Assembly (NCBI GenBank): GCA_950097015.1
Contig: CATNEN010000025.1
Coordinates: forward strand, 806,001 to 870,000
Source of the DNA: Macrostomum hystrix
Lineage: Eukaryota > Animalia > Platyhelminthes
Reading direction: 5' to 3'
Length of the DNA: 64,000 nucleotides
Under the pieces are notes generated by a model that saw only the letters and a list, made by a program, of their open reading frames with translations, ran no database searches and was not told the DNA's origin. The number at the start of each line of letters is the position of its first letter. Within the stretch, counting starts at the first letter, position 1. A program made the translations under genes and the position numbers. Below are positions 21,946-64,000 of the stretch, piece after piece.

Positions 21946-21974
21946 TCAAACGAAACGAGAGAATCGAGTCGTCG

Positions 21975-25380: not shown

Positions 25381-25495
25381 CAAGCCCCCAAGCCTTCTCT
25401 CCGCGGCTGCGCCCCAAATGAATGTGGCCTCGCTGCGGAATCGAGCTCAGGGACATTGGTGCGTGAGGCATAAGCGTTAACCGCTCTGCCACTCA
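25380..25495 (-). mobile_element. SINE family A, 5' half only
   Basis: Nearly identical to 14617-14730. Confidence 0.82.
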
Positions 25496-26300: not shown

Positions 26301-26606
26301 GGGGTGAGTGGCAGTGCGGTCTTACGCGTTTGCCTCGCCCCTCGCACCAAGGTCCCTGAGTTCGATTCCGTGGCGAGGCCACATTCATTTAGGGCGCAGT
26401 CGCGGAGAGAAGGCTTGGTGGCTTGTCGTGCAATTTACGCCCATGAGGGGCCAACCTCCAAGGCACAGTGAGAGTGTAAAATGCCAGATGTACACACCTG
26501 TGTGAGTGTGTGCTCAGGAGTCAGCAAAATGGGCAGAATTGCAGAATGGCTGCAGGACTAGTGTCACCAAATGATGTGCCATCGTCCACAGCCCTCGTGC
26601 GATTAC
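26301..26606 (+). mobile_element. SINE family A copy lacking the hairpin core
   Basis: Head with GAGTTCGATTCC; body collinear with 10383-10752 except for the deletion at ~26478. Confidence 0.85.
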
Positions 26607-37615: not shown

Positions 37616-37705
37616 ATGGACGAAAATGAAGAACAGCTTGCCAGGCTGAAAGAGATCATTCGGCACAGTGAAGAGGAACTGAAGAAGAAGGAACACAAAT
37701 ATCAG
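37616..37705 (+). CDS. Golgin coding exon 1 (MDENEEQLARLKEIIRHSEEELKKKEHKYQ)
   Basis: Below the ORF-track cutoff; donor CAG|GTTCAT. Confidence 0.75.
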
Positions 37706-40700
37706 GTTCATATTTCGATTTATGTTGCAAAATTATTCTAAAAATTGACACTTTTTTCCACAGCTACATTATTAATTAGATGAGAACTCCAACCGTTTAG
37801 CTTGTAATCTATTTTTGGCTTTTCATGTTGTTTTCTTTGCATAACCTTTGTCTTCAAGGATGAGATATCAGCTCTGCACGCGGCCAGCGTGTTCAAAGAC
37901 GATCGTCTGTCCCAGCTGAATAGCCAGATTCTCCAGCTGGAGGGTCAGGCGCACGAGCTGCGCGAGAGTGTCGCCGAGCAGCTGCAGGTTGTTGAGTCTC
38001 GGGACGCAGCCATCAGGCTGATGCGCGAACAGCAGGCCGCAGCGCTGCGCCAGAAGGAGGAGCAGTTCGCCGAGAGGCTGGCAGCCACGCAGCGCCACTT
38101 TGAGGACTGCCTGGGCGAGAAGGAGGACGAGATGGCCCGCTTGATGGACACCATCAGGGTAATAAAAAAATAATAATAATTTCAGGAGGGCTGCAGGCTA
38201 TAGCGCACCAAAACTATCATTTGGTCAGAGCGGTTAACGCGTTTGCCTCTCGCACCAAGGTCCCTGGCGAGGCCACATTTATTTTGGGTGCAGGTGCGTA
38301 GATAAGGCTTGGGGCCTTTTCGTTCAATTTGTGCCTTTTAGGGCCAACCTCCAAGGCACAGTGAGAGTGTACACTTGCCTGAAGATGAGAAAGTCAGGGC
38401 AGATATACACACCAGTGTTAGTGGGTGCCTGCGTACATTATCTGGGTGTGTTCTCAGGAGTCAGTGAAATGGGCAAAATTGCCTTCTCGATGGCTGCGGG
38501 TCTAGTGTCACCAAATGATGTGCCGTTGCCCACAGCCCTTCTTCAGTTATTATATTATAATTATATAGTAAATGCAAAAAGAACAGTTTTTCTTCATTTT
38601 TAGCGAAAGCAGGAGGAGATTGCTATGAAAGATGACGACATGCTGATTTTGATGAAGAGTCACGAGGAGTCCGTTAAAAAGTTGTTTAAAGGTAAGTTTG
38701 TTTTTTTTACAAAAGAGTTGTGACTGGTCATTTAGTTAAAGTACATGGGCAAACAACTGCTAAACTTCTCCGCCATTGCGCAGAGGCCAGCAAGCAGAAT
38801 GTGGACGCTGTCTATGAAACTCAGCTGCGCGACTGTCAGGAGGCTCTCAGACAGAAGATCGACCGGCTTAAGGATGCAGAAAGCCAATTATTGGAGCAGC
38901 AGAGTCAGCTAGCCCAGAGAGACTTTGCTGTCAAAGAGCTTAAAAATGAGCTTAATAATTTGAAGGTGAGTTAATAGATTTTATAGTTTTTTTAATGATT
39001 ATAGACAATACACTTGTAGAAGAAGCAATCTTCTACTTTTTCTCTACTTTAAGTAGCAGGCATGCCAAAAGGGTCGAGGAAAAAAATTCAAGACAAAAGA
39101 TAGCGGGCAAAACGGTCCTTTTAAGGTCCATACTTTAGTCAAGTGTAAGTTATTCAAAATGAGGTACAATGATATCATTCAGAGCAGGTATTAAAACAAA
39201 TGACATTTATAGAGAAACTGGTTTTCATTTTATTAGGTGCTTTAATTTCGTGGCTGTAAAGTTATCAAGAAAAATAGCCTTGTAATTATGATCAAGACAT
39301 TTAGTTTGCTAGACTAGCATATTAATTCCCCATTGGGGAGCCTGGAAAAAGCGCACGTAATTCGAAGAAAATATTTTAAAGTCGAAAAGAGAATTAGTTA
39401 TAATAAAGTACTGCTTTCCACTCCACAAAGTTTTTTGTTTATCAAATTTTAATAAAAGGAAAAATGGAAATTCCCACTCCATCTCTCAACAAATCCCCAC
39501 TCCATCTCTCAACAAATCCCCACTCCATCTCTCAACAAATCCCCACTCCATCTCTCAACAAATCCCCACTCCATCTCTCAACAAATCCCCACTCCATCTC
39601 TCAACAAATCCCCACTCTGTCACCCAAAAATCCCCATTCATTCACCCAACAAATCATCACTCTATCTCCCAACAAGTGCCCAATGTATCACCCATTAAAT
39701 CCCCACTATATCACCCAACAAATCCCCACTCTATCACCCAACAAATCCCCACTCTTTCACCCAAAAAATCACCACTCTTTCACCCAAAAAATCACGGCTC
39801 TTGCACCCAAAAAATCACCACTCTTTCACCCAAAAATATCGCCACTCTCATCGCCCAACAAATGCCTACTCTATCACCCAACAAATGCCTACTCTATCAC
39901 CCAACAAGTCCCCACTCTTTATCCCAACAAACTCTCAGTCTATCATCAACAAATGCTCACTCTTTCAACCAAAAAATCACCACCAACAAATCCCCCAAGC
40001 CCCAACAACGCCGAGTCAGTCTGTATTTCAGAAAACCAGGATTCTTTTCTTCCAGAAATCAGTCGTTGACGCTGAAGCCGCTGCCGCGGCGGCCACCAGC
40101 ACCTCGGAGGCTCAGCTGGCAGCCGCCAACGAAGCGGCACGCAAGGAGCTGCAGGCGGAGAGGAAGCGGCATCTGGCTGCCAAGGCCAAGGCGAAATCAT
40201 TGGAGCGGCAGCTAGCTAAGGCCAAGGAGGAGCAAGCTGAGGTCAGTTCGCCTTGTCTGCGTGCTTGTACATCGAGGCTTTTTGCCTAGTTTTAAGGTGG
40301 ATGGACTTATACTACGGTCAATACCTGTACTGCTACCACATATTAGTAGAGACATCTCTCGGTATAGAAATTTAGTAATGTACTCTTGTATTAAAATATA
40401 ATATAGAACTACACCTAGCTCGAAAGCTATTGCGCGGCGCTTAAATAAACTGCGCAAAGGCTGTGTCCAGCAGTTCAGTCCGTGGACTGTGTAGTACACG
40501 ACACCCACCCAATTGTCACCCAGTTGTTAAAAAGGTATCAGCATCAGTTGGTGTAATAAGAGTGGGTGTAGCGTCCCCCTAGTCTATGGACTGAACAGCC
40601 GTACGCAGCCTTCAGATGTGCTGCGCAATAGCTGCGGCAGCGGTTGCACATCTGACTCAATCGGGGCAGGTGTAATTCATTAGCAAATATTATTACTATA

Positions 40701-43700
40701 CTATCATTAATAGTACTATTGCTACTACCTCGCAGGCTGCCAGTCAGTGGGCTCGCGAAGCCGAAGAGCTGCGGTCAAAGGCGTCCCAACTTGAGTCTGA
40801 GCGCAATGGCTTGGAGCAGCGCCTGACTGAACTGCAGACAGCGGCTGCTGCTATTGCCGTGCCAGCAGCTCCGGTTGCCACGGCAACGGCCCCAGCCGCT
40901 GTGGACGATCTACGCGGTGAGCTTCAAGCTGAAAAGAAAAAGCATCTGTCAACGAAGGCGCGGGTCAAGTCGCTGGAGAAGCAGCTGAAGGCGCTGGAGG
41001 CGCAACTGCAGCAGGCCAAGGCGAGCTGTCAGGTGAGTTTTATTGTCTCAGTTGGCCTTTTGTCAAAATAAGCTAAGAGGGGATGATAGGTCTGAGGATC
41101 GAATTTCCTATCGAATTATTTGTATCCTCTGAAAATGACATTTATTGCCCAGCCCATTAAATCAAACAGCTTAACTGTGAAAATGACATTTATGTCGATG
41201 GCTGTAGATCTTATCCAACTCTTTAGATTAAATAACGCATGTTTTCTAACTCTTTAAATACTACCGTCTTGGCAACGTTCGCTTTCTAAATAAAAACTCG
41301 ACCGAGTAATTCAGTATTTTTTGTTTATTGTCCAATTTTGGTCACAGGATTGTTTGTGTGAATTTTTTTCTACTTTCAAGTTACTTTTATGGTTGCTAGT
41401 TAGCTCATTTCGGTTATGGTGTAGTTATTATCAGTTTTTGTACTATTCGCTTTAATATCAGCGTTCTTATTGCAGGACACGGGCTCTGAGAGCAGCCCGG
41501 AACATCAGACAGAGACCAGCGAACTGCAGCAGCAACTAGCAGACCCGACAGAGCCAACTGAATATTCCAAGGCTGTGCGGTCAATGCTGACTAAGAAAAC
41601 TGAGGAGCTGGCCAAGCTGCAAGATGAGCACTCTGAGCTCAAACAGCTGGTCGATCGTCTGGAGTCGGAGAAAGTGCAGCTGTCTGAACAGATTGCTCTG
41701 CTAACCAATTCAAAGCAAAATGCTGAGTCCAACTCGTCAGATTTAAAAAACATTGTGCAGCAACTTGAATCAGAAAAGATGTTGATTGTCGCGGAAAATG
41801 AGCGAATTATACAGGAACTCAGCTCCGCAAGAGCTCTACTAGAAGAGACAAAACAAGTATCAGCAGTGATGCAAATAGAAAATGCAGAACGTTTTGATGA
41901 AATCAGGCAACTGACGAACGAATTGCAACTCTCAAAGGTTGATTATGATGAGCTTCGAAAGCAAATCGATAGTCTGCAATCGGATAAATCCGAGCAATTT
42001 TCTAGCCACAAGGAGCGAATGACAGAACTCACTGAGAAGCTGCAAGTCAGCGAGTCAAGCTCAAATGATCTGCAACAGCAATTGACAGAACTCACTCAGA
42101 AGATGCAAGTCAGCGAGTCAAACTCAAGTAATCTGCAACAGCAATTGACAGAACTCACTGAGAAGCTGCAATCGACTGAGTCAAGCTCAAATGATCTGAA
42201 ACAGCAATTGACAGAACTCATTGAGAAGCTGCAAGTTAGCGAGTCAAGCTTAAATGATCTGCAACAGCAATTGACAGAACTCACTCAGAAGATGCAAGTC
42301 AGCGAGTCAAACTCAAGTAATCTGCAACAGCAAGTTACAGAACTCACTGAGAAGCTGCAATCGACTGAGTCAAGCTCAAATGATCTGAAACAGCAAGTGA
42401 CAGAACTCATTGAGAAACTGCAAGTCAGCGAGTCAAACTCAAATGATCTGCAACAGCAAGTGACAGAACTCACTGAGAAGCTGCAATCGACTGAGTCAAG
42501 CTCAAATGATCTGAAACAGCAATTGACAGAACTCATTGAGAAGCTGCAAGTCAGCGAGTCAAGCTCAAATTATCTGCAACAGCAAGTGGCAGAACTCACT
42601 GAGAAGCTGCAATCGACTGAGTCAAGCTCAAATGATCTGAAACAGCAATTGACAGAACTCATTGAGAAGCTGCAAGTTAGCGAGTCAAGCTCAAATGATC
42701 TGCAACAGCAAGTGGCAGAACTCACTGAGAAGCTGCAAGTCAGCGAGTCAAGCTCAAATGATCTGCAACAGCAAGTGGCAGAAATCACTGAGAAGCTGCA
42801 AGTCAGCGAGTCAAGCTCAAATGATCTGCAACAGCAAGTGGCAGAACTCACTGAGAAGCTGCAAGTCAGCGAGTCAAACTCAAGTAATCTGCAACAGCAA
42901 GTGGCAGAAATCACTGAGAAGCTGCAAGTCAGCGAGTCAAGCTCAAATGATCTGCAACAGCAAGTGGCAGAACTCACTGAGAAGCTGCAAGTCAGCGAGT
43001 CAAGCTCAAATGATCTGCAACAGCAAGTGGCAGAACTCACTGAGAAGCTGCAAGTCAGCGAGTCAAACTCAAGTAATCTGCAACAGCAAGTGGCAGAACT
43101 CACTGAGAAGCTGCAATCGACTGAGTCAAGCTCAAATGATCTGAAACAGCAAGTGGCAGAACTCACTGAGAAGCTGCAATCGACTGAGTCAAGCTCAAAT
43201 GATCTGAAACAGCAATTGACAGAACTCATTGAGAAGCTGCAAGTTAGCGAGTCAAGCTTAAATGATCTGCAACAGCAATTGACAGAACTCACTCAGAAGA
43301 TGCAAGTCAGCGAGTCAAACTCAAGTAATCTGCAACAGCAAGTTACAGAACTCACTGAGAAGCTGCAATCGACTGAGTCAAGCTCAAATGATCTGAAACA
43401 GCAAGTGACAGAACTCATTGAGAAACTGCAAGTTAGCGAGGCAAGCTCAAATGATCTGCAACAGCAAGTGGCAGAACTCACTGAGAAGCTGCAAGTCAGC
43501 GAGTCAAGCTCAAATGATCTGAAACAGCAATTGACAGAACTCATTGAGAATCTGCAAGTCAGCGAGTCAAACTCAAGTAATCTGCAACAGCAAGTGACAG
43601 AACTCACTGAGAAGCTGCAATCGACTGAGTCAAGCTCAAATGATCTGAAACAGCAAGTGGCAGAACTCACTGAGAAGCTGCAATCGACTGAGTCAAGCTC

Positions 43701-46700
43701 AAATGATCTGAAACAGCAATTGACAGAACTCACTGAGAAGCTGCAATCGACTGAGTCAAGCTCAAATGATCTGAAACAGCAATTGATAGAACTCATTGAG
43801 AAGCTGCAAGTTAGCGAGTCAAGCTCAAATGATCTGCAACAGAAAGTGGCAGAACTCACTGAGAAGCTGCAAGTCAGCGAGTCAAACTCAAGTAATCTGC
43901 AACAGCAAGTGGCAGAACTCACTCAGAAGCTGCAAGTTAGCGAGTCAAGCTCAAATGATCTGCAACAGCAAGTGGCAGAACTCACTGAGAAGCTGCAAGT
44001 CAGCGAGTCAAACTCAAATGATCTGCAACAGCAGTTTTCAGAGAAAGAAAAATTATTAAACGATTTAGAGAAGAAGCTGGATTTCGCTCAGCAACGAATT
44101 AAAGAGTTGACTTCGGAATCACATTCATCCCTTCAAGATATGTCGAAGAGAATGGATGAGCAAGAAGCGATTAATCTAAATCTTGAGCGTTGTCTTAACG
44201 TGAAATCGGATGAATTATCATCTCTACAAAAGTCTTTCGACGAGTTCACTGCAGAGAAATGTGCAGAAGTTTCCGAGCTTTCACTTGAAGTGCGTAGCTT
44301 GCATCAAAAGTTAAACGATTCGGAGATTCGCATTTCTGATTTGATTATCTCTTCAAGCAAGCTGCAAGAAGAAGCTGTTACACTGAATCAGTCAATCCAG
44401 GATTTACAGTCACGAAACGAATTTCTTACAAAAGCTTTAGAAGCTTCTGAGAATGAAAAATTCTCCAGTGATCGCGCTCTTAATGCTAAAATTTTAGAAA
44501 GAGATGAAGAAGTGAGTCGTTTTCAATCGTGTTTGGAGGACTTAAAGCTCCAGCTGAATGAAATGAGGTCCACGTCAGAAGCATCTGGAAATGAGCTAAT
44601 GAATAGATTTGAAGAGTGCGACAAAGCCAGGGTTGCAGAGATAAACGAGCTCAAGGGTTTTGTTACGCAAAAGGACGCACAACTGACTGCAGTCCAAGAC
44701 CGCATTGAAAAGCTTAAAGAAGAGCTTGAGTCGAGTCAGAACGAAGTATCTGTGTTAAAGGAGCAGCTGCTTAATTCGACAGAACAAATCAGTTTGCTAA
44801 TCCATGAAAAGAATGATCTAACGGAAGATGCCGTAGAAGCCAAGCGTGTTTTGGAAGAAGCATCCGATCGTATTGAGGAGTTGGAATCTTTAGAACAGAA
44901 ATGTGTTGTATTGCAGCGCACTGTGGAAGCTCTGCAGATCTCTCTAACCTCTTCAGAGAACGAATGTCAGAGTCTTCGTTCGCTTCTACAGACGGTTAGC
45001 GACTCCAAGGGTGACTGTGAAATGCAAATCTGGGAGCTAGAAGAGACGAAAAAGTCTCTAATCACTCAACTTTCCCAGGCGGACGCTGAAAGCCGCGAAT
45101 TGTCAGAAAAGCTACAAAAGTCTGTCGTTGAGCAAATCAGCATTCAATCCGAACAGGCTCACTTGCACAACCAGTTAGATTCTAGTGAGCGCAAGCAGCA
45201 GAAGCAGGCTGATGAAATTGAAGCGCTCAAGCGTAATCTAGATGATGTAACGACTCAATTGGTCAATGTCATTCAACAGCGCGATCGAATCCAATCTTTG
45301 CGAAATGAGGAGGTCGAGGCGTTGAAATCTGAATGCAAAAGCTTGGACAAGCAGTTGTATGAACGAAACCAGGAGGCTGAAAGTATGAAAAGCACGTTGC
45401 AGAAGTTAAGTCAACAGGTAGAAGTAATTGACGATTTGAACCATCAAAATGTTTCTCTTCAGGGTCAACTGGCTGAGGCAAAAGATTCTATCGCTGACAT
45501 TAGTGATGAGAATTCTAAATTGCGAGATCGTTTGCAGGCAACAATTACAGAAAACTCAGATCTGAAAGAGTCCGTAAATACAGTTAGTTATCAGGCAGAT
45601 CAGTGGCATTCTTCTTTAATCAGCCATCAGCGCGAATTAGAGAGCCTACAAAAAACACTGACTTACGCTGAGTCCGAATTCGCTGAGGCGCGTCAGGAGA
45701 ATGCAGGCTTGCAACAGAAAATTATGCAGGCTAAAGAAGAAACTCGTGTCCTCAAAGAGAAATGTGCCAGACAAGAGGAGCATTTGCAGCGTATCGAAGA
45801 TGAAAATGCCAATCTCACTACGCAATGTCGGACGCTAAAACACAATTGCGTCGATCTTGAATCCCATCTTGAATCCATAAAGGCAGAGTACTTTGTACTG
45901 CAAAGAGATCACTCTGCACTAGAGTCCTCAAGTGAGCAACTATCCGCAAATTTCAGTGAGAACCAACTGCAATTAGAGCAGCTGGATGACCAGCTGGATC
46001 GATTAACTTCTGACAAGCAACTGTTGCTTCAAGAGTGCAAGCTTCTTAAGGAAGAAAATCAATCTCTCCACAGCCTCCTCGATTCAGTAAAAGCAAACAG
46101 CAATGAGTGCCAAGAAAGACTGCATTCCTCATTAGAGGAGATTAGATCTCTATCTGACAGTGTGAGTGAACTAAAAGAAAATGAGGACAAGTTGCACGAA
46201 ATTCAACGGAATTTAATTGTGGCCAACGAAAACTTCGAGCTCAAATGTTCTCGCCTGGACGAGGATAATTCTCAGTTGCGACAGGTTGTCGAAGATTTAA
46301 AGTTGATGGTTGAAGAAATAGAATCAAAGCTATCCGAAAAATCTAACGAAGCAAGCAAGTACCAAACGGCAGAGATGTTGCTACTTGCAGAAGTCGATCA
46401 ACTCCGAGCTGAACTTCTCACACGAGAGGAAAAAATTTCCGAGGTAAGTTCCAAGGCACGCCTTAATTCTGACCTATTAGCTCGCATATCTGACAATGTC
46501 GCTGACCTAATAAACGCTACCAGAGAGTGGTCTCTAGAATGTAATTCAACCATTACTGTTGATGTGAGTCCCGGTTGCTCTATCGAAAATTGTATAGAAC
46601 ACATAACGAAATTCGTGTGTTCGGCAAGAAGGGCATCCATGGACGCAAGTACTCAATCAACTCTTCAAAAGCAGAAACTGGAGCAAGTGGAACAAAATCT

Positions 46701-49700
46701 AGCCAAAGCACTAAAGGAGAAGAACGACACAGAAGCTGCTTTAGAATTCACTCGAGACTCACACATTGCTTGCGAAAATAAATTAAAAGACATCACAGCT
46801 AACTACGAAAATACACGTTCAAGATTAGAAAAAATGAAGACAAAAATGAATAATATCATTCAAACCATATCAAATCAAGAAAGCATTAACGCGGAAATAA
46901 CTGCACAAAATGCGGAGCTGAAACAGGCTATTAGCAACTTAGAAACTAGCAAGCAGGCACTTCACAGCGAGCTTACACAAACAGAAAAACAAAAGGACGA
47001 GAAGCTCAATGAGTTACAAAAACTGTTATTCGAGTCACATAAAGCTAATGATAAGTTAACAACAAGTATGTCTGAGCTGAGCGACTCAAAGGCATCGCTT
47101 GAGGAGCAGCTTCGCTCGCTTGGTGAGGCCAAGCAGAAAGACGAGCAGAAGCTCACTCGCGCTTCCGAAGTGCACGAGAAAATGAGCGGCAAGCTAAAGA
47201 AGGTTCTGGAGTCTAACAAGCTTCTCAAGGTCAAGGTGAAGGAGCTTCAGGAAAAAGTGGACGCTCTTCAGAGAGAGATTGACGAGTCCAGTGAATCTTC
47301 AAAATCTCAAGAGACTAAGATCAGTGAGCTCTCCGAAGCGAATTGCAGTCTTGTTGCACAAGTTGACTCAAAGTCGAAGCAGATTGCTGATCTCGAAGAG
47401 TCCGTTGAACAGCAGTCCAACACTATCGAAAGACTGACTACTGAGCTGCACAGCCTGGATTCGGCCAGAGCAAACGTTTCTTCTGAGCTCAGAGCGACAG
47501 AGGAAGCAAAGTCGCAGCTTGAGTCTCGAGTATCTGATCTGCTTGCTCAAAATGAAGGTCTGGAAGAGCAAGTTAGGAGGCTTCGTGAAGAGTCCAGTGA
47601 GCTGCAGTCATCAAAGCAGGCTTTGGACGAGGCAAATGAAGCACTAACAAGAAGTGTGTCTGAGCTGAGCGACTCAAAGGCATCGCTTGAGGAGCAGCTT
47701 CGCTCGCTTGGTGAGGCCAAGCAGAAAGACGAGCAGAAGCTCACTCGCGCTTCCGAAGTGCACGAGAAAATGAGCGGCAAGCTAAAGAAGGTTCTGGAGT
47801 CTAACAAGCTTCTCAAGGTCAAGGTGAAGGAGCTTCAGGAAAAAGTGGACGCTCTTCAGAGAGAGATTGACGAGTCCAGTGAATCTTCAAAATCTCAAGA
47901 GACTAAGATCAGTGAGCTCTCCGAAGCGAATTGCAGCCTTGTTGCACAAGTTGACTCAAAGTCGAAGCAGATTGCTGATCTCGAAGAGTCCGTTGAACAG
48001 CAGTCCAACACTATCGAAAGACTGACTACTGAGCTGCACAGCCTGGATTCGGCCAGAGCAAACGTTTCTTCTGAGCTCAGAGCGACAGAGGAAGCAAAGT
48101 CGCAGCTTGAGTCTCGAGTATCTGATCTGCTTGCTCAAAATGAAGGTCTGGAAGAGCAAGTTAGGAGGCTTCGTGAAGAGTCCAGTGAGCTGCAGTCATC
48201 AAAGCAGGCTTTGGACGAGGCAAATGAAGCACTAACAAGAAGTGTGTCTGAGCTGAGCGACTCAAAGGCATCGCTTGAGGAGCAGCTTCGCTCGCTTGGT
48301 GAGGCCAAGCAGAAAGACGAGCAGAAGCTCACTCGCGCTTCCGAAGTGCACGAGAAAATGAGCGGCAAGCTAAAGAAGGTTCTGGAGTCTAACAAGCTTC
48401 TCAAGGTCAAGGTGAAGGAGCTTCAGGAGAAAGTGGACGCTCTTCAGAAAGAGATTGACGAGTCCAGTGAATCTTCAAAATCTCAAGAGACTAAGATCAG
48501 TGAGCTCTCCGAAGCGAATTGCAGCCTTGTTGCACAAGTTGACTCAAAGTCGAAGCAGATTGCTGATCTCGAAGAGTCCGTTGAACAGCATTCCAACACT
48601 ATCGAAAGACTGACTACTGAGCTGCACAGCCTGGATTCGGCCAGAGCAAACGTTTCTTCTGAGCTCAGAGCGACAGAGGAAGCAAAGTCGCAGCTTGAGT
48701 CTCGAGTATCTGATCTGCTTGCTCAAAATGAAGGTCTGGAAGAGCAAGTTAGGAGACTTCGAGAAGAGTCCAGTGAGCTGCAGTCATCAAAGCAGGCTTT
48801 GGACGAGGCAAATGAAGCACTAACAAGAAGTGTGTCTGAGCTGAGCGACTCAAAGGCATCGCTTGAGGAGCAGCTTCGCTCGCTTGGTGAGGCCAAGCAA
48901 AAAGACGAGCAGAAGCTCACTCGCGCTTCCGAAGTGCACGAGAAAATGAGCGGCAAGCTAAAGAAGGTTCTGGAGTCTAACAAGCTTCTCAAGGTCAAGG
49001 TGAAGGAGCTTCAGGAAAAAGTGGACGCTCTTCAGAGAGAGATTGACGAGTCCAGTGAATCTTCAAAATCTCAAGAGACTAAGATCAGTGAGCTCTCCGA
49101 AGCGAATTGCAGTCTTGTTGCACAAGTTGACTCAAAGTCGAAGCAGATTGCTGATCTCGAAGAGTCCGTTGAACAGCAGTCCAACACTATCGAAAGACTG
49201 ACTACTGAGCTGCACAGCCTGGATTCGGCCAGAGCAAACGTTTCTTCTGAGCTCAGAGCGACAGAGGAAGCAAAGTCGCAGCTTGAGTCTCGAGTATCTG
49301 ATCTGCTTGCTCAAAATGAAGGTCTGGAAGAGCAAGTTAGGAGACTTCGAGAAGAGTCCAGTGAGCTGCAGTCATCAAAGCAGGCTTTGGACGAGGCAAA
49401 TGAAGCACTAACAAGAAGTGTGTCTGAGCTGAGCGACTCAAAGGCATCGCTTGAGGAGCAGCTTCGCTCGCTTGGTGAGGCCAAGCAAAAAGACGAGCAG
49501 AAGCTCACTCGCGCTTCCGAAGTGCACGAGAAAATGAGCGGCAAGCTAAAGAAGGTTCTGGAGTCTAACAAGCTTCTCAAGGTCAAGGTGAAGGAGCTTC
49601 AGGAGAAAGTGGACGCTCTTCAGAAAGAGATTGACGAGTCCAGTGAATCTTCAAAATCTCAAGAGACTAAGATCAGTGAGCTCTCCGAAGCGAATTGCAG

Positions 49701-52700
49701 TCTTGTTGCACAAGTTGACTCAAAGTCGAAGCAGATTGCTGATCTCGAAGAGTCCGTTGAACAGCAGTCCAACACTATCGAAAGACTGACTACTGAGCTG
49801 CACAGCCTGGATTCGGCCAGAGCAAACGTTTCTTCTGAGCTCAGAGCGACAGAGGAAGCAAAGTCGCAGCTTGAGTCTCGAGTATCTGATCTGCTTGCTC
49901 AAAATGAAGGTCTGGAAGAGCAAGTTAGAAGACTTCGAGAAGAGTCCAGTGAGCTGCAGTCATCAAAGCAGGCTTTGGACGAGGCAAATGAAGCACTAAC
50001 AAGAAGTGTGTCTGAGCTGAGCGACTCAAAGGCATCGCTTGAGGAGCAGCTTCGCTCGCTTGGTGAGGCCAAGCAAAAAGACGAGCAGAAGCTCACTCGC
50101 GCTTCCGAAGTGCACGAGAAAATGAGCGGCAAGCTAAAGAAGGTTCTGGAGTCTAACAAGCTTCTCAAGGTCAAGGTGAAGGAGCTTCAGGAGAAAGTGG
50201 ACGCTCTTCAGAAAGAGATTGACGAGTCCAGTGAATCTTCAAAATCTCAAGAGACTAAGATCAGTGAGCTCTCCGAAGCGAATTGCAGTCTTGTTGCACA
50301 AGTTGACTCAAAGTCGAAGCAGATTGCTGATCTCGAAGAGTCCGTTGAACAGCAGTCCAACACTATCGAAAGACTGACTACTGAGCTGCACAGCCTGGAT
50401 TCGGCCAGAGCAAACGTTTCTTCTGAGCTCAGAGCGACAGAGGAAGCAAAGTCGCAGCTTGAGTCTCGAGTATCTGATCTGCTTGCTCAAAATGAAGGTC
50501 TGGAAGAGCAAGTTAGGAGACTTCGAGAAGAGTCCAGTGAGCTGCAGTCATCAAAGCAGGCTTTGGACGAGGCAAATGAAGCACTAACAAGAAGTGTGTC
50601 TGAGCTGAGCGACTCAAAGGCATCGCTTGAGGAGCAGCTTCGCTCGCTTGGTGAGGCCAAGCAGAAAGACGAGCAGAAGCTCACTCGCGCTTCCGAAGTG
50701 CACGAGAAAATGAGCGGCAAGCTAAAGAAGGTTCTGGAGTCTAACAAGCTTCTCAAGGTCAAGGTGAAGGAGCTTCAGGAAAAAGTGGACGCTCTTCAGA
50801 GAGAGATTGACGAGTCCAGTGAATCTTCAAAATCTCAAGAGACTAAGATCAGTGAGCTCTCCGAAGCGAATTGCAGCCTTGTTGCACAAGTTGACTCAAA
50901 GTCGAAGCAGATTGCTGATCTCGAAGAGTCCGTTGAACAGCAGTCCAACACTATCGAAAGACTGACTACTGAGCTGCACAGCCTGGATTCGGCCAGAGCA
51001 AACGTTTCTTCTGAGCTCAGAGCGACAGAGGAAGCAAAGTCGCAGCTTGAGTCTCGAGTATCTGATCTGCTTGCTCAAAATGAAGGTCTGGAAGAGCAAG
51101 TTAGGAGACTTCGAGAAGAGTCCAGTGAGCTGCAGTCATCAAAGCAGGCTTTGGACGAGGCAAATGAAGCACTAACAAGAAGTGTGTCTGAGCTGAGCGA
51201 CTCAAAGGCATCGCTTGAGGAGCAGCTTCGCTCGCTTGGTGAGGCCAAGCAAAAAGACGAGCAGAAGCTCACTCGCGCTTCCGAAGTGCACGAGAAAATG
51301 AGCGGCAAGCTAAAGAAGGTTCTGGAGTCTAACAAGCTTCTCAAGGTCAAGGTGAAGGAGCTTCAGGAGAAAGTGGACGCTCTTCAGAAAGAGATTGACG
51401 AGTCCAGTGAATCTTCAAAATCTCAAGAGACTAAGATCAGTGAGCTCTCCGAAGCGAATTGCAGTCTTGTTGCACAAGTTGACTCAAAGTCGAAGCAGAT
51501 TGCTGATCTCGAAGAGTCCGTTGAACAGCAGTCCAACACTATCGAAAGACTGACTACTGAGCTGCACAGCCTGGATTCGGCCAGAGCAAACGTTTCTTCT
51601 GAGCTCAGAGCGACAGAGGAAGCAAAGTCGCAGCTTGAGTCTCGAGTATCTGATCTGCTTGCTCAAAATGAAGGTCTGGAAGAGCAAGTTAGGAGACTTC
51701 GAGAAGAGTCCAGTGAGCTGCAGTCATCAAAGCAGGCTTTGGACGAGGCAAATGAAGCACTAACAAGAAGTGTGTCTGAGCTGAGCGACTCAAAGGCATC
51801 GCTTGAGGAGCAGCTTCGCTCGCTTGGTGAGGCCAAGCAAAAAGACGAGCAGAAGCTCACTCGCGCTTCCGAAGTGCACGAGAAAATGAGCGGCAAGCTA
51901 AAGAAGGTTCTGGAGTCTAACAAGCTTCTCAAGGTCAAGGTGAAGGAGCTTCAGGAAAAAGTGGACGCTCTTCAGAGAGAGATTGACGAGTCCAGTGAAT
52001 CTTCAAAATCTCAAGAGACTAAGATCAGTGAGCTCTCCGAAGCGAATTGCAGTCTTGTTGCACAAGTTGACTCAAAGTCGAAGCAGATTGCTGATCTCGA
52101 AGAGTCCGTTGAACAGCAGTCCAACACTATCGAAAGACTGACTACTGAGCTGCACAGCCTGGATTCGGCCAGAGCAAACGTTTCTTCTGAGCTCAGAGCG
52201 ACAGAGGAAGCAAAGTCGCAGCTTGAGTCTCGAGTATCTGATCTGCTTGCTCAAAATGAAGGTCTGGAAGAGCAAGTTAGGAGACTTCGAGAAGAGTCCA
52301 GTGAGCTGCAGTCATCAAAGCAGGCTTTGGACGAGGCAAATGAAGCACTAACAAGAAGTGTGTCTGAGCTGAGCGACTCAAAGGCATCGCTTGAGGAGCA
52401 GCTTCGCTCGCTTGGTGAGGCCAAGCAAAAAGACGAGCAGAAGCTCACTCGCGCTTCCGAAGTGCACGAGAAAATGAGCGGCAAGCTAAAGAAGGTTCTG
52501 GAGTCTAACAAGCTTCTCAAGGTCAAGGTGAAGGAGCTTCAGGAGAAAGTGGACGCTCTTCAGAAAGAGATTGACGAGTCCAGTGAATCTTCAAAATCTC
52601 AAGAGACTAAGATCAGTGAGCTCTCCGAAGCGAATTGCAGTCTTGTTGCACAAGTTGACTCAAAGTCGAAGCAGATTGCTGATCTCGAAGAGTCCGTTGA

Positions 52701-55700
52701 ACAGCAGTCCAACACTATCGAAAGACTGACTACTGAGCTGCACAGCCTGGATTCGGCCAGAGCAAACGTTTCTTCTGAGCTCAGAGCGACAGAGGAAGCA
52801 AAGTCGCAGCTTGAGTCTCGAGTATCTGATCTGCTTGCTCAAAATGAAGGTCTGGAAGAGCAAGTTAGGAGACTTCGAGAAGAGTCCAGTGAGCTGCAGT
52901 CATCAAAGCAGGCTTTGGACGAGGCAAATGAAGCACTAACAAGAAGTGTGTCTGAGCTGAGCGACTCAAAGGCATCGCTTGAGGAGCAGCTTCGCTCGCT
53001 TGGTGAGGCCAAGCAGAAAGACGAGCAGAAGCTCACTCGCGCTTCCGAAGTGCACGAGAAAATGAGCGGCAAGCTAAAGAAGGTTCTGGAGTCTAACAAG
53101 CTTCTCAAGGTCAAGGTGAAGGAGCTTCAGGAAAAAGTGGACGCTCTTCAGAGAGAGATTGACGAGTCCAGTGAATCTTCAAAATCTCAAGAGACTAAGA
53201 TCAGTGAGCTCTCCGAAGCGAATTGCAGCCTTGTTGCACAAGTTGACTCAAAGTCGAAGCAGATTGCTGATCTCGAAGAGTCCGTTGAACAGCAGTCCAA
53301 CACTATCGAAAGACTGACTACTGAGCTGCACAGCCTGGATTCGGCCAGAGCAAACGTTTCTTCTGAGCTCAGAGCGACAGAGGAAGCAAAGTCGCAGCTT
53401 GAGTCTCGAGTATCTGATCTGCTTGCTCAAAATGAAGGTCTGGAAGAGCAAGTTAGGAGGCTTCGTGAAGAGTCCAGTGAGCTGCAGTCATCAAAGCAGG
53501 CTTTGGACGAGGCAAATGAAGCACTAACAAGAAGTGTGTCTGAGCTGAGCGACTCAAAGGCATCGCTTGAGGAGCAGCTTCGCTCGCTTGGTGAGGCCAA
53601 GCAGAAAGACGAGCAGAAGCTCACTCGCGCTTCCGAAGTGCACGAGAAAATGAGCGGCAAGCTAAAGAAGGTTCTGGAGTCTAACAAGCTTCTCAAGGTC
53701 AAGGTGAAGGAGCTTCAGGAGAAAGTGGACGCTCTTCAGAAAGAGATTGACGAGTCCAGTGAATCTTCAAAATCTCAAGAGACTAAGATCAGTGAGCTCT
53801 CCGAAGCGAATTGCAGCCTTGTTGCACAAGTTGACTCAAAGTCGAAGCAGATTGCTGACCTCGAAGAGTCCGTTGAACAGCAGTCCAACACTATCGAAAG
53901 ACTGACTACTGAGCTGCACAGCCTGGATTCGGCCAGAGCAAACGTTTCTTCTGAGCTCAGAGCGACAGAGGAAGCAAAGTCGCAGCTTGAGTCTCGAGTA
54001 TCTGATCTGCTTGCTCAAAATGAAGGTCTGGAAGAGCAAGTTAGGAGGCTTCGTGAAGAGTCCAGTGAGCTGCAGTCATCAAAGCAGGCTTTGGACGAGG
54101 CAAATGAAGCACTAACAAGAAGTGTGTCTGAGCTGAGCGACTCAAAGGCGTCGCTTGAGGAGCAGCTTCGCTCGCTTGGTGAGGCCAAGCAGAAAGACGA
54201 GCAGAAGCTCACTCGCGCTTCCGAAGTGCACGAGAAAATGAGCGGCAAGCTAAAGAAGGTTCTGGAGTCTAACAAGCTTCTCAAGGTCAAGGTGAAGGAG
54301 CTTCAGGAGAAAGTGGACGCTCTTCAGAAAGAGATTGACGAGTCCAGTGAATCTTCAAAATCTCAAGAGACTAAGATCAGTGAGCTGCTTGAATCAAACG
54401 CCATGCTGGAGGTGCAAGTGGTTGCAAAAAGTAAGACAATCCAGGAACTTGAGGAGCTTCGGGTTTCTCTGTCCCGAAGTTTCTGTGAGTTTCAGAACGA
54501 GTTCTCAAAGCAAGAAATGACTTTACAAGAATTAGCAGCATGCAAGTCGTCTCAGGCTGCGGCTATTGAAGAGTTAAGTCTTATTCGCAGCGCCCAGGAA
54601 CGTGCACTCTCTGAGCTTCAGAATTGGACTTCAGCACAAGAAATCAGGGTAAGTGAACTCTTGAGTGAAGTTGTTTTAAAGGACGACCAGCTAGCAAAAG
54701 TTAGTTTGAAAATGCAAGCCTTAGAGGATGCGCTGCAATCTAAACAAAATCGCGTAGCTGAGCTTGAATGCATGATTCAATCATCTGGTATTAGCCAAAG
54801 TGAGCTTGCAAGTCAAGTGCAAGCGCATTCTGTCCAATCTAGGGAATTGTTTTCTTTGCTTACTAAAGCCATTTCTGATTCGAACTGCACGGAGGTTGAG
54901 AGCGAATTCGTATCTCAGAATTTGGAAGAAAGCTTCGACGGCTTGAGAGTTCTCGTTTTACGTTTGTCTGAGCTTAACCATGCATTGAATCGTCGCCTTG
55001 TTGATTCTGAGTCTGTGGTGGTCAAGACTCAAGAAAAAGTTATTGAGCTGAACTCTGTGAGAGCGTCACTTGAGAAATCTCTGTCAGATCTGCAGAAATC
55101 TGCTGTAAGCCAAGAGGAAACCATTTCTCAGCTTCAAGACGTTAACTCTAAACAGAATAAGAAAATTTTTGAGTTGCAGGCAATCCGAGCCGCTCATGAG
55201 AAAGTCATTGCTGAGCTGCAGGATTCAAACACTTTTCAGTCGACTGAGCTGAGAATTATGTGCGATCGACTGCACGAGTCAGAAGAAGCGAAGCATCAGC
55301 TGGACCATCAAGTGATGAAGTTGCATGAGACGAGTGAGATTTTTTCTCGCAAATGCGACGATTTGACAGAATCCAAACGCGCACTCGAAGAGATTGTTGA
55401 AAATATGACGCAATTGCGGATCGCTGACGAAGTGGAACTAAGCAAGGCTAGCAAGAGATGTGAAGACCAATCGCTGGAATTAAAATGTGCTTTAGAAATA
55501 ATCGGCGAAAGGAATTTGAAAATAACGGAACTAAATAGACGCGTTGAAGACAATCAAAAGAGTGCCTCGGTGCTGCAGGAGAAATTGGGGCAAAGTAAGC
55601 GGCAAAGCGAAGAATTAAAAAGCATTGTATTTGGGCAAATGAAGGCCATTTTAGAACTGCAAGACACAAATAGCGCTTTGGAAAAGTCAATTTCGGAGTA

Positions 55701-58700
55701 CGTAGACATCATTTATTCGCAGGAGACCCAGATTTTATTGATGCAAAAGGCTAGCTTTGTGCAGGAAGGCACTGTCTCGAGCCTCAAGGATGTCATCTCT
55801 GCATTGAGGAGGGCTATAGCAGAGCTGCAAGACACTAATTCTGTCCTGGACGAGCAGCTGACGGAATTGCGAGAGCGAAAAAGTGGTTTGACAATCGAAT
55901 TAAAATGTGCAAATGACAAGGTTAAAGAACTTGATGCGTTGCTGAGTAATGAAGAACTCATAAGAGTGCGACAACTGGAGGCTAGTAATGTAAGTCTAAG
56001 CAGTGAGTTGTGTCACGTTCGCCAAGAAAACACCCACCTAGAGCAGCGCATTAGCAATTATGAAAAGCAAATTATGCTACATCAGGCAGAAAGCACCCAG
56101 CTTTCTAATAAAATGTTTATTCTTAAGCAGGTCTACAAAGATCTAGAGGTTAGAATGGTCAGTCTGAATGTTGAGATTCAGGTGTCTGAAGAATCGACTG
56201 TCAATCTGCAAACAGAAAGCCTGACTTTAAAGGAAACAATTCAGTTTTTGACAAATGAAATTAATAGTTTAAAGGCATCTTGGCGAACTAGCGAGGTACA
56301 TTTTTATCGTTAATTTTACTTTTTAGTTTACGCTATTACGTAATAGTCTAATTAACGTATAGTAACGTAACGTATAGCCTAATTAAGTATAAACCTGTGT
56401 AGGCTCAATAAACCTAATATCTTGCATAACATTGCAATTAGAATTTCTTCTTTTTTTAGGAAACTCCAGCCGATTTTACTGCCAAGATGCAGCTCGCTCT
56501 GACTGAAAGCGAGCAACTTCAGGCCAAAGAGCAAATATTAATTGGCGAGATTGCCGCGCTAGAGGGCAAGTTAGAAGAAGCGGCAGCTGAGAAGGACGAT
56601 TTGACAACGAAGATCAGCACTTTGTCAGACAAGCTCGATGAACTAACATCCTCCAGTACACATCACTCAGCTAACAGGGAGGTCCAATTAGCTGAGCAGG
56701 AAAGCATAACCTCTGAGCGCGACGCCTTGGTTGTGGAAAACAGCCAGTTAAAGGAGAAGCAAGACCAGACCTGTGCGGAGCGAGATCGCATGAAGGAGAA
56801 GTGTGCTCGACTCGTGAAGCAATGCCGCATCTTTAAGGAGGCAGCCAAGCAGGTTCAACAGCGAGCTGACACTGCAGACTGCGAGTGTCAGACTGAGGCG
56901 GAGACCGAGTCAGTAGCTGCTTTGACTGACGCATCAACTGAGACAGAAGCAGCGGTGACTTCGGAGTCGTCATTTGAGCCCGAGAGATCGATGGTGGAAG
57001 CCGGCAACCTCACTGAGCCAAGTGGCGCCGTGTCAGGTGTCTCTCAACAGGAAGTCGAGAGCCTGCTAACTTCAAAGATGTCACTGACGGACGAAGTGTT
57101 CGAGCTGAAGCAGAGGCTCGCGTCATCGGACTCAGCGAGGCTGACCGCAGAGTCCAATCTGGAGCAGGCGATGAAACGTCTGCAAGCAGTCAAGTTGTTG
57201 GCAGAGCGTGTGTCGAGCGGAGAGTCGGCGATTGAAGAACTGCCTGAGCTGGAGACCGTTGCCACCCCAGTTCGAGTCGCCCTGCTGGTAAGAAAATACA
57301 GATTTTTCCTATCGATAAAAGTACTACGATTGCGGTTTTGTGATTTTTTATCGTTTGGACTAACATTAACATCTATCTATTTTTCCAGGGCTCACAAATG
57401 GCTAATAGACAAAGCCCGTTTGGTCTGGAAGAGCTACAGTCAAAGTTGCAAAGCTTGGAAACCGACAGAGATGCTATTTTATTGGACCGTGACACGCTAG
57501 CAAATGAGCATCACAAGATCATTGCAAAGCGGGATGCACTTGCCTTAGAGCGAGACGCTCTGCTCTCAGACCGTGATGCAATCACATCCGAGCGAGACGC
57601 TCTGCTCTCAGACCGTGACGCAATCACATCCGAGCGAGACGCTCTGCTCTCAGACCGTGACGCAATTACATCCGAGCGAGACGGTCTGCTCTCAGACCGT
57701 GATGCAATCACATCCGAGCGAGACGCTCTGCTCTCAGACCGTGACGCAATCACATCCGAGCGAGACGCTCTGCTCTCAGACCGTGATGCAATCACATCCG
57801 AGCGAGACGCTCTGCACTCAGACCGTGATGCAATCACACTCGAGCGAGACACTCTGCTCTCAGACCGTGATGCAATCATTTCCGAGCGAGACGCTCTGCT
57901 CTCAGACCGTGATGCAATCATTTCCGAGCGAGACACTCTGCTCTCAGACCGTGATGCAATCATTTCCGAGCGAGACGCTCTGCTCTCAGACCGTAATGCA
58001 ATCATTTCCGAGCGAGACGCTCTGCTCTCAGACCGTGATGCAATCATTTCCGTGCGAGACGCTCTGCTCTCAGACTGTGATGCAATCACATCCGAGCGAG
58101 ACGCACTAGCCTTGGAGAACGCCCAGCTCATGGAGTCTGCCACTCTGCTAAAGGAGAAGCAAGACCAGGCCTGTGCGGAGCGAGATCGCATGAAGGAGAA
58201 GTGTGCTCGACTCGTGAAGCAATGCCGCATCTTTAAGGAGGCAGCCAAGCAGGTTCAACAGCGAGCTGACACTGCAGACTGCGAGTGTCAGACTGAGGCG
58301 GAGACCGAGTCAGTAGCTGCTTTGACTGACGCATCAACTGAGACAGAAGCAGCGGTGACTTCGGAGTCGTCATTTGAGCCCGAGAGATCGATGGTGGAAG
58401 CCGGCAACCTCACTGAGCCAAGTGGCGCCGTGTCAGGTGTCTCTCAACAGGAAGTCGAGAGCCTGCTAACTTCAAAGATGTCACTGACGGACGAAGTGTT
58501 CGAGCTGAAGCAGAGGCTCGCGTCATCGGACTCAGCGAGGCTGACCGCAGAGTCCAATCTGGAGCAGGCGATGAAACGTCTGCAAGCAGTCAAGTTGTTG
58601 GCAGAGCGTGTGTCGAGCGGAGAGTCGGCGATTGAAGAACTGCCTGAGCTGGAGACCGTTGCCACCCCAGTTCGAGTCGCCCTGCTGGTAAGAAAATACA

Positions 58701-61700
58701 GATTTTTCCTATCGATAAAAGTACTACGATTGCGGTTTTATGATTTTTTATCGTTTGGACTAACATTAACATCTATCTATTTTTCCAGGGCTCACAAATG
58801 GCTAATAGACAAAGCCCGTTTGGTCTGGAAGAGCTACAGTCAAAGTTGCAAAGCTTGGAAACCGACAGAGATGCTATTTTATTGGACCGTGACACGCTAG
58901 CAAATGAGCATCACAAGATCATTGCAAAGCGGGATGCACTTGCCTTAGAGCGAGACGCTCTGCTCTCAGACCGTGATGCAATCACATCCGAGCGAGACGC
59001 TCTGCTCTCAGACCGTGATGCAATCACATCCGAGCGAGACGCTCTGCTCTCAGACCGTGACGCAATCACATCCGAGCGAGACGCTCTGCTCTCAGACCGT
59101 GACGCAATCACATCCGAGCGAGACGCTCTGCTCTCAGACCGTGATGCAATCACATCCGAGCGAGACGCTCTGCTCTCAGACCGTGACGCAATCACATCCG
59201 AGCGAGACGCTCTGCTCTCAGACCGTGCTGCAATCATTTCCGAGCGAGACGCTCTGCTCTCAGACCGTGATGCAATCACATCCGAGCGAGACGGTCTGCT
59301 CTCAGACCGTGATGCAATCACATCCGAGCGAGACGCTCTTCTCTCAGACCGTGATGCAATTACATCCGAGCGAGACGCTCTGCTCTCAGACCGTGACGCA
59401 ATCACATCCGAGCGAGACGCTCTGCTCTCAGACCGTGACGCAATCACATCCGAGCGTGACGCATTGGCCTTGGAGAACGCGCAGCTCATGGAGTCTGCCA
59501 CTCTGCTAAAGGAGAAGCAAGACCAGGCCTGTGCGGAGCGAGATCGCATGAAGGAGAAGTGTGCTCGACTCGTGAAGCAATGCCGCATCCTGAAGGAGGC
59601 AGCCAAGCAGGTTCAACAGCGAGCTGACACTGCAGACTGCGAGTGTCAGACTGAGGCGGAGACCGAGTCAGTAGCTGCGGCTGGAGCTGATGCAAGACCT
59701 GTGACTGCTTTGACTGACGCATCAACTGAGACAGAAGCAGCGGTGACTTCGGAGTCGCCGTTTGAGCCCGAGAGATCGATGGTGGATGCCGCGACTGAAA
59801 TAGATGTCTATGATCTGGTGGAGTGGCAATGTCTCTGTGCGGCTATTGAAGCAGCTGGTCTTAGCCTCGGCGACATCGGCCTTTCATCTTCGTTCGCTTT
59901 ATCATCGTTCACTGAAATCTCTGAGGTTATTCGTCTCCTTGCTGCTGTAAGACATTTTCTGAATTGTTAATTGTCATTTCACAGAGCCAAATTGTTTCGC
60001 AAAGCTAAATTCTGACCTCCCTAAAACGCAGAGCATGTCCGGCCAGCGCCAGCAACTGGCGGACATTAGCGAGCGTTGCGAAAGCCTAGAGCAGACCATA
60101 GCCGAGAAAGAGGAGTCCCTGACCGAGATGATGGAGAGACTAGAGATTGCCAACAAGCGGGCTGCGGCTGCCAACTCTACACCGGCTCGTCCTGGCGCTT
60201 CCGTGGCCAGTCGTCAAGTGGAGTGCGACCTAACCCAGCCGTTAATTGGCGAATTGGAGGCCACCCTGGCTAAGCGGGACGGTAAAATTGCCGCCATGGA
60301 GCGGGACAGCCGAGAACTAAACCGCAAGCTGGAGTCGCATCTGCAGACTATGCGACGAATGGAGGCCAGACTGCAGTCCTCTAGTCGGCTGCTCCGCGCT
60401 CGGCTTGTAGATAGCGCCGAAGCTGAGCGGCTCGTTGTTGAGGTTAGTGAGGGATTGATCTAAGGTAAAATTACCGACTGGGACTAACCTGTGGGATAAC
60501 AAGATCTTAAGATTTAAGCTCTCAGATAGTTCTTAATTTCTGAAGTGTTTCCAATTATTTTTAAACAGGTGGAATCGCTGTTTGCCCAACTAGACGAAGC
60601 CGAAGAAGAGGTTAGCCGTCTGCGACTGACCCTGCGCGATCGCGACAATGAGCTGCTCCGACTGGCCGACCAGTTGCGCGTTGAAAGCGAAGCGAAGCGC
60701 ATTGATTTGGCCACAATGCGCGAACAGGTGCGACTGTACGAAGCTGAGCTGCGTCGTGTGCGCTCCGACCTGGACGCCAAAGACGAGCTACTGGCGCTGG
60801 CTCGCGAGACCGCCTCGATGTCCACTGTCGGCGATGATGCCGAAGAAGCTGTAGACTCAGTCGATGCCAGTGGCGGAACTAGTTCTAAGCGAGGACTGGA
60901 AGAGTTAAGCGTAGAGCTGTCAAATGCGAAGAATTTAGTTGAGTCGCTGAATAGCGAGTTGCAAGACTCAAAGCTGTCGCGCGAGGCATTGAATGATGAA
61001 CTAGCCGAAGCTAGAGGAGCTATTGACCGATTGACAACCAGTCTGAGCGCTGCAAAGTTGGAACTGAATGAAAAGTTAACACAATTTGAAGCTGCTAGTG
61101 ACAAACTGCGCTCAGAACTGTCCATTACTAGTCGAGATAATAATATGCTCAGCGATGAACTCATTGAAGCTAAAAACGCGATTGACCGTTTAAATACCGA
61201 ATTATTTAACGCGAATGAAAATTCAGTTGTGACGGAGCTTCGAGCTGAATTGGCATCGACCAGAAAAGAGAAGCTGGTTCTTAGCGAGGAGTTGACCAAG
61301 GCAAATGACGAGCTTGACAGCTTGACGGCTGAGTTGGCCAAAGCTAAGGAGGATATGCTTAGCGAATCCAATGAATTTAGACTCACTATAGAAAAGCTGA
61401 GCAATGAGTTGAAGGTTGCTGCAGAGGACAAGCAAATGCTTAACTACCGATTTTCTGAAGCGAACAGTGTGATTGACAGCATAAGAGAGAATCTGGCAGC
61501 TTCCACACACGCTAAAGAAGCTTTGAGCGGCGAATTAGCTGAAGCTAAATTGTCGATTAGTCAATTAAACGAACAATTAGACATTGCTCACTCATCGCTA
61601 ATCAGTAGGGAAGCAGGAAAGCACGTTGTCTCTACTGAAAGTAGTTCCACTCAGACAGAAACGTTCGCAGATTGTGAAGACGGCCGCGAAAGCGAGCGCT

Positions 61701-63439: not shown

Positions 63440-63915
63440 TCTGCTAGTTATAAAAGCAAGTAAAATTCTAGTAGATGGAAACCCACTGGGTGGAATCCCA
63501 TTGGGTAGAATCCCATTGGGTAGAATCCCATTGGGTAGAATTCCACTGGGTAGAACCACATTGGGTAGAATCGCACTGAGTAGAATCCCACTATATAGAA
63601 TAACATTAGTTCAAATCCCACTGGGCAGAATCCCATTGGGTAGAATCCCTCTGGATGGAATCCAACTAGCTAGAATCCCACTAGCTAGAATCCCACTCTG
63701 TAGAATCACATTTGATAGAATCCCACTGGGCAGAATCCCACTGGATGGAATCCCACTAGCTGGAATCCCACTAGTTCAAACCCCACTGGGTAGAATCCCA
63801 TTGGGTAGAATCCCACCGGCTAGAATCCCACTAGTTAGAATCCTACTGGATAGAATCCCATTGGGTAGAATCCCACCGGCTAGAATCCCACTAGTTAGAA
63901 TCCTACTGGATAGAA
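63440..63915. repeat. Minisatellite, 15 bp (TAGAATCCCATTGGG) in the golgin 3' UTR region
   Basis: TAGAAT at 63506, 63521, 63536. Confidence 0.9.
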
Positions 63916-64000
63916 TCTATATATTTTTGCCTATTTTCCAAGCTCTTCAACTCTAACACGGTTATCAGTCGTGTAGTGCGATTTCGCTTGACAATAGAAA

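Follow-up and report, generated by a model that had tools for sequence, protein, structure and literature searches.

The stretch analysed here (the window) comprises 64,000 nucleotides of the flatworm Macrostomum hystrix, positions 806,001 to 870,000 of contig CATNEN010000025.1 in assembly GCA_950097015.1, read on the forward strand. It contains, on the + strand, a giant coding exon of 14,820 nt or 4,940 codons (41476-56295), which is in phase 0 at both ends, is bounded by an acceptor (...ttattgcag/) and a donor (gag/gtacat), and yielded generic coiled-coil matches only in Pfam. Inside this exon lies the subject of this report, a tandem array in which a unit of 588 bp (196 codons) is present in 12.45 head-to-tail copies that are more than 99% identical (47064-54386, + strand, 7,323 nt). 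The array falls within a single + strand open frame of 4,947 codons (41470-56313); array and frame are both direct observations. The same holds for its occurrence at a single locus, as the unit was not found elsewhere in the 220-Mb assembly, neither as a paralogue nor as a second haplotype.

A repeat search returned 13 in-register copies with a spacing of exactly 588 nt from 47044 to 54399, and the limits of the array were set by a sliding scan in which every base was compared with the one 588 nt farther downstream; the unit register used throughout is 47044 + 588k. Tandem Repeats Finder missed the array solely through its longest period of 500. The complete units differ from their consensus at 1-6 of 588 positions. 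Both edges are gradients: in unit 1, the opening 24 nt match the consensus at about 70% identity, and past offset 287 of unit 13 the identity is about 50% over some 70 nt and then falls to background. These edges look like limits of homogenisation and not like the breakpoints of a single duplication. Apart from these 70 nt or so past the right edge, the flanks showed no older in-register copies; farther downstream of the array lies a faint paralogous stretch (E 2.7e-4).

The 196-residue unit corresponds to exactly 28 heptads. One heptad phase spans nearly all of its residues and, as directly observed, continues across the unit junction, with a simple heptad window score dipping for a few residues near 34-39 and 188-194. 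The strongest harmonic of the hydrophobic pattern is at exactly 3.5 residues (z 19.7), and the module contains no proline and three glycines, its commonest residues being Glu (33), Ser (32), Leu (26), and Lys (19). No sub-repeats beyond the heptad were found within the module. AlphaFold2, run on two modules without an alignment, gave a mean pLDDT of 86.8 and helices at 2-83, 90-280, and 286-391, with one helix break of 5-6 residues per module in a Ser-rich segment (pLDDT 62-65). This segment, module residues 84-89, is the sole modelled non-helical break; in unit 2 it lies at 47881-47898 (+), and it recurs every 588 nt. A Lys-rich zone at module residues 29-70 (first instance 47128-47253 on the + strand, repeating every 588 nt) has a net charge of +5 by charge count, in a module with a net charge of -12. 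A first-pass annotation of this DNA had described a 196-residue coiled-coil module amplified about 12.4 times, with almost identical copies and a basic patch in each; the analysis bears this out on copy number, identity, and coiled-coil character, and the basic patch is real but modest. A coiled coil rises 0.1485 nm per residue, which by simple arithmetic gives about 29 nm per module and, for the roughly 2,440 residues of 12.45 units, about 360 nm.

The rod of myosin II is likewise a heptad coiled coil and has periodicities of 28 and 196 residues (7 x 28), so that 196 residues is a structural period in both. The flatworm module differs in that the 28-residue charge period is absent from it, and no Myosin_tail match occurs among the best 25 of the 46 Pfam matches for the module. 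Their agreement at 196 is fortuitous, a matter of heptad arithmetic.

Variation between the units is sparse and mostly silent. Ten sites vary inside the array, of which eight are synonymous (CAG/CAA, GAA/GAG, AGT/AGC, GAT/GAC, AGG/AGA at two sites, CGT/CGA, and GCA/GCG) and two are conservative replacements, namely AGA/AAA (R/K) and, in unit 3 at window position 48591, CAG/CAT (Q/H). The listing of variable columns reproduced every codon variant given in the first-pass annotation together with its two replacements; the one addition, not listed there, is an M/V replacement at 47068, where the array begins to take shape on its left edge. Of the sites of the consensus unit, 133 count as synonymous and 455 as non-synonymous, and the expected synonymous share ranges from 23% under equal rates to at most 35% if all changes were transitions, against the observed 8 of 10. 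This directly observed excess has a P of 2e-4 to 5e-3, depending on the transition bias assumed. Over the 55 pairs of complete units, mean dS is 0.022 and mean dN 0.0016, a ratio of 0.07. The unit alignment and dN/dS count that the annotation had proposed as a check thus show the synonymous excess.

An internal control is provided by a second array in the same exon, at 42020-44033 (+), where the repeat search found 32 copies of a 63-nt unit (21 residues, three heptads). This array is older, with about 89% identity between copies, and comprises three peptide subtypes (LQVS, MQVS, and LQST) whose order is partly repeating. Its variant alleles number 5 synonymous and 21 replacement, near the neutral share. 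As the 63-nt array has no synonymous excess, the excess in the 588-bp array does not stem from the exon or from local mutational bias. Purifying selection on the amino-acid sequence of the module, which the first-pass annotation had proposed, is thereby supported, on small numbers.

What such selection would preserve may be considered in two ways. Each module might be a discrete putative binding site, for a Rab or Arl GTPase or, via the Lys-rich zone, for an acidic lipid, in which case the array would be a multivalent platform. The net charge of +5 in an otherwise acidic module would fit this, as would an amino-acid constraint (dN/dS 0.07) that is stronger than in the 63-nt array; yet constraint of this size would be expected of a plain coiled coil too, the Lys-rich zone sits inside the continuous heptad pattern, and no domain or family matches the module, for which Pfam, PDB, and ESM Atlas gave generic coiled-coil matches only. 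A binding platform is considered quite unlikely, and the module is read as a constrained part of a rod. That the array is a translated, constrained part of a giant coiled-coil rod is held with high confidence.

Arrays of near-identical units can be distorted during assembly. The published M. hystrix assembly was built from an inbred line (F ~0.998) with PacBio reads and canu, and was polished with Arrow and with Pilon short reads (PMC10468722). The units are more than 99% identical, and the true array could be shorter or longer than assembled, or some variants could belong to other units. Such a partial artefact in copy number or variant placement is considered very unlikely, given that the 7.3-kb array is shorter than ordinary PacBio reads and, having unique flanks, is within their reach; that the assembly is highly contiguous (220,453,370 bases in 42 contigs); that the frame is intact all through; and that the variants are ordered, copy-specific, and, unlike errors, biased to synonymous sites. 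Because of the short-read polishing, the placement of variants calls for more caution than the existence of the array.

This caution applies to the order of unit types. Linkage between the GAA..AGA and GAG..AAA haplotypes is complete, and the units follow the order R,R,K,R,K,K,R,K,R,K,R,K,K (RRKRKKRKRKRKK), an exact match to the linked haplotypes and order in the first-pass annotation, from which that annotation had concluded that the array was amplified largely as a dimer of 1,176 bp. The possibility that the array grew mainly in steps of an R unit followed by a K unit, with the alternation later broken by a few single-unit slips, draws on the strict alternation in units 2-5 and 6-12, on the recurrence of one dimer (units 4-5 and 9-10 are the same bar one base, the only dimer type that recurs), and on the R/K site being shuffled against the block-wise layout of the other variants. 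The alternation itself, with 9 switches in 12 steps, is not significant (exact one-sided P 0.12). For lags 1 to 6, the mean numbers of differences between complete units are 3.5, 2.9, 4.0, 3.0, 2.8, and 5.0, respectively, a series that hints at an even/odd structure but is inconsistent at longer lags: likeness at lag 2 is just marginally above that at lag 1, and the values for lags 5 and 6 are at odds with a dimer. In addition, short-read polishing may have redistributed the R/K site. The dimer amplification is thus not established; a dimeric growth phase is possible, and mainly dimeric growth is regarded as somewhat unlikely.

The variants other than R/K lie in blocks and do not alternate. 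The linked pair at 536 and 542 reads G..T in units 1, 2, 11, and 12 and A..A in units 3-10, and so few switches have a P of 0.024; this contrast between edge and centre is what homogenisation from the middle of an array usually produces. When R/K is combined with the variants at 92 and 536, all four combinations are present, which means that the units have exchanged sequence.

To place the giant exon in a gene, GT-AG pairs that keep the reading frames open were sought on both of its sides, and the resulting exons were scanned singly rather than as a joined protein. From sequence alone, phase-0 GT-AG introns would connect the giant exon to five upstream exons on the + strand, at 37616-37705 (with the ATG start), 37859-38158, about 38825-38965, 40056-40241, and 40736-41032, and to six downstream exons on the same strand, at 56460-57287, 57389-58687, 58789-59946, 60032-60442, 60569-62416, and 62492-63427, the last being followed by a stop codon to 63430. 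All 11 introns modelled in this way are in phase 0. We infer that the chain, including its continuation to the C-terminal membrane span described below, forms one gene with a predicted product of about 7,400 residues. The exons at 40056-40241 and 40736-41032 (+) each hold a motif of about 25 residues, rich in Lys and Ala (ELQAE-K/R-K-x-HL...KSLE-K/R-QL), a pair that looks like an old exon duplication.

The weakest link of the chain is the junction after the giant exon. In the putative intron there (56296-56459), an AATAAA stands at 56407, 52 nt short of the acceptor; 27 nt past the acceptor there is an ATG (56487). In a flatworm with trans-splicing, these two elements could mark the boundary to an independent gene, possibly trans-spliced, that comprises the downstream, tail-anchored part, or they could indicate an alternative 3' end. 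Taken to its conclusion, the array gene would stop at 56311-56313, where an in-frame stop stands five codons past the putative donor, and its product would be a soluble coiled coil some 5,300 residues long; the exon at 56460 and all those after it would belong to a second gene, which may start at ATG 56487 after receiving a spliced leader (SL) at the 56459/56460 acceptor. SL trans-splicing is frequent among the genes of Macrostomum (PMC10468722). Set against two genes are the donor gag/gtac and the acceptor tttttttag/, which join the frames in phase 0 with no stop; the uniform phase of all 11 modelled introns; the coiled-coil nature of both parts, each with arrays that are multiples of the heptad; and a weak paralogy of the module to the exon at 60545-62431 (E 0.001). 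A division into two genes is regarded as somewhat unlikely, and the single gene is followed in the next paragraphs.

In the single-gene model the protein ends in a membrane anchor. The last 22 codons (63362-63427, +) encode a hydrophobic C-terminal tail anchor with the stop directly after it, i.e., a single membrane span at the extreme C-terminus, which belongs to the array protein only if the exon chain is right. The same genome has its own golgin-84 (PF09787, 84 bits, contig 34) and its own CASP (PF08172, 174 bits, contig 24). In a MAFFT alignment with the C-termini of these two proteins, A46, R47, Y53, L57, H58, and L65 are invariant, so that the pattern A-R-x5-Y-x3-L-H stands in the same register in all three anchors. 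According to PMC5840792, the transmembrane domains of the three rim golgins are related and have a conserved tyrosine, and this tyrosine is present in the anchor described here. The remainder of the predicted protein is a long rod of cytoplasmic type, with only coiled-coil Pfam matches over the 4,947-codon frame and the flanking exons and with an all-helical model of its 196-residue modules. In ESM Atlas, the last exon is nearest to the Golgin_A5 and CASP_C clusters, with 192 shared features and a value of 0.92, a lead and no more.

Identity with either of these two golgins was considered and rejected. The Golgin_A5 profile scored 18.3 bits, far below its cut-off of 31.7, and the CASP_C profile 9-12 bits, far below its cut-off of 28, with a weak match at profile positions 225-245 of 252. 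With both profiles below threshold and the true orthologues located on contigs 34 and 24, the gene is neither golgin-84 nor CASP. Golgin-84 (GOLGA5) and CASP resemble the predicted protein in being tail-anchored coiled-coil rim golgins whose span has the A-R-x5-Y-x3-L-H register, and differ in length, the flatworm gene being about 10 times longer. On this comparison the gene would encode a third, much larger tail-anchored coiled-coil protein, with an anchor of the golgin-84/CASP type and the architecture of giantin.

Giantin (GOLGB1) is similar in having a very large coiled-coil rod that comes mostly from one very large exon. It is about 3,260 residues long; the flatworm model is more than twice this length and contains three near-identical arrays. 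Similar N-terminal and D-R-D motifs are presumably present in giantin, which serves as a lead only. No similarity to giantin appeared in HMMER or word searches of the rod part and the last exon, and the two proteins were compared by architecture only. Giantin, too, has a tail anchor at its C-terminus, beyond which little or nothing extends into the lumen, and its transmembrane domain is related to those of golgin-84 and CASP (PMC5840792). It has been reported to be chordate-specific (PMC5840792). Taken together, the gene is probably a giantin-like rim golgin, as judged from anchor and architecture, and the reading as a tail-anchored golgin is favoured slightly over its alternatives.

Searches for relatives returned little. 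A word search with residues 880-1860 of the giant exon found none, and a HMMER search of 1.84 billion representatives with exon residues 880-2054, a query containing one module, returned just two weak coiled-coil matches, at 21-23% identity. As no self-match was obtained, the proteins of this genome evidently lie outside that library. The last exon likewise had no sequence relatives. Such an absence points to a fast-evolving, lineage-restricted coiled coil and is no proof of novelty.

The nearest precedent is ANC-1 of Caenorhabditis elegans, the orthologue of nesprin-1/2, a giant helical protein of 8,545 aa with a C-terminal membrane span and, in its central part, six tandem repeats of 903 residues (PMC8139857). 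These repeats are almost 100% identical in their nucleotides and are required for function (PMC8139857). In both cases, a large and young or homogenised in-frame array of modules would lengthen a tail-anchored rod. ANC-1 differs in its N-terminal CH domains, in the KASH peptide after its span, and in its repeats, which are predicted to be spectrin-like three-helix bundles, whereas the flatworm module is a plain 196-residue heptad coiled coil and the predicted protein ends at the span with no lumenal peptide. A giant of the KASH/nesprin type was also tried as a candidate and rejected, given that the protein ends at the membrane span and that no CH or spectrin match occurs in the exons scanned, a set without those at 37616-37705 and 40056-40241. 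The array represents a known means of lengthening rods, found here in a different protein, and not a new kind of system.

The explanation proposed is as follows. Unequal crossing-over or replication slippage would have amplified a 588-bp segment in register, and unequal exchange and gene conversion would still homogenise the array, which would be why the copies are more than 99% alike. The unit comprises only whole codons and whole heptads, so that adding or losing a copy would preserve both the reading frame and the coiled-coil register, and since selection would remove amino-acid changes, the variants surviving among the copies would be almost all synonymous. As a two-stranded coiled coil, the array would form a rod of about 360 nm, with a short Ser-rich hinge and a Lys-rich zone in every 29 nm or so. 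The product could then be a tail-anchored, giantin-like tether of about 7,400 residues on the Golgi or ER membrane, in which the array would be mainly a spacer that sets length. As a whole, comprising a homogenised and constrained rod array in a tail-anchored giantin-like protein, this explanation is considered likely, with less assurance than the rod array taken by itself.

Several observations count against it. At the array, the number of units (12.45) is not whole and the edges are gradients, from which it follows that the origin was not one clean duplication; the selection test is carried by only 10 variable sites; and Pilon short-read polishing can shift variants between near-identical copies. 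Between the array and the anchor, the exon chain is a model, and AATAAA 56407 and ATG 56487 flank its weakest junction. As to the golgin relationship, the Golgin_A5 and CASP_C profiles are far below their cut-offs, the Atlas itself warns that its family is likely to be incorrect if only a few of the ten best matches agree, and neither the module, nor the adjoining unique part of the exon, nor the last exon had a relative in the searches described.

With these points in view, the locus may be regarded as a clear example from nature of how near-identical modules can lengthen a rod and keep codon and heptad register, one in which purifying selection is measurable despite an identity above 99%. 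If the link to the tail anchor holds, the locus would point to a giantin-like golgin outside chordates, where current surveys report none, and the copy number of this gene could be used for tests of membrane-tether length in a flatworm genus with genetic tools. A bolder proposal is that flatworms possess a third tail-anchored rim golgin, belonging to the giantin class that is considered exclusive to chordates, with more than 7,000 residues and an extended length above 1 micrometre that is set by copy-number-variable, heptad-preserving arrays (63, 588, and 42 nt). This is thought unlikely; if true, copy-number alleles, natural or engineered, would be a ready series for testing tether length against Golgi/ER organisation. 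The weight of the case is modest, as it concerns one well-described orphan gene known from its DNA sequence only.

The 42-nt arrays lie in the downstream part of the coiled-coil gene. There, a 1,400-bp unit made up of one complete exon and its 101-nt intron has been duplicated in tandem (56749-59790, +); a preceding partial copy is 99.7% identical over 640 bp and a following copy about 95% identical. Each full copy carries an array of a 42-nt repeat (14 residues, two heptads), at 57548-58104 and 58948-59462.

Just upstream of the coiled-coil gene, on the opposite strand, is an exon of a mitochondrial carrier gene (34322-34843, -; Pfam Mito_carr, E 5e-23). A dispersed element of about 200-280 bp, with 78-90% identity between copies, occurs in at least seven places, one of them in an intron of the coiled-coil gene; copies lie at 34013-34290, 38224-38517, 10408-10694, and 26313-26573 on the + strand and at 14537-14722, 25378-25487, and 3757-3938 on the - strand. 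It is probably a short interspersed nuclear element (SINE) or a miniature inverted-repeat transposable element (MITE). In the left part of the window, large G+C-rich (61%) exons encoding cadherin repeats, with a weak protocadherin-type N-terminal match, are found at 1824-3602, 4167-4706, and 10804-11445 (+), interleaved with minisatellites. Long non-coding minisatellites are unusually dense at 1-34000 and 63478-63917, e.g., a 15-mer in 97 copies (6487-7986), a 34-mer in 71 copies (19535-21948), and a 39-mer in 64 copies (31476-33979), and it is because of them that G+C content and GC skew show large swings.

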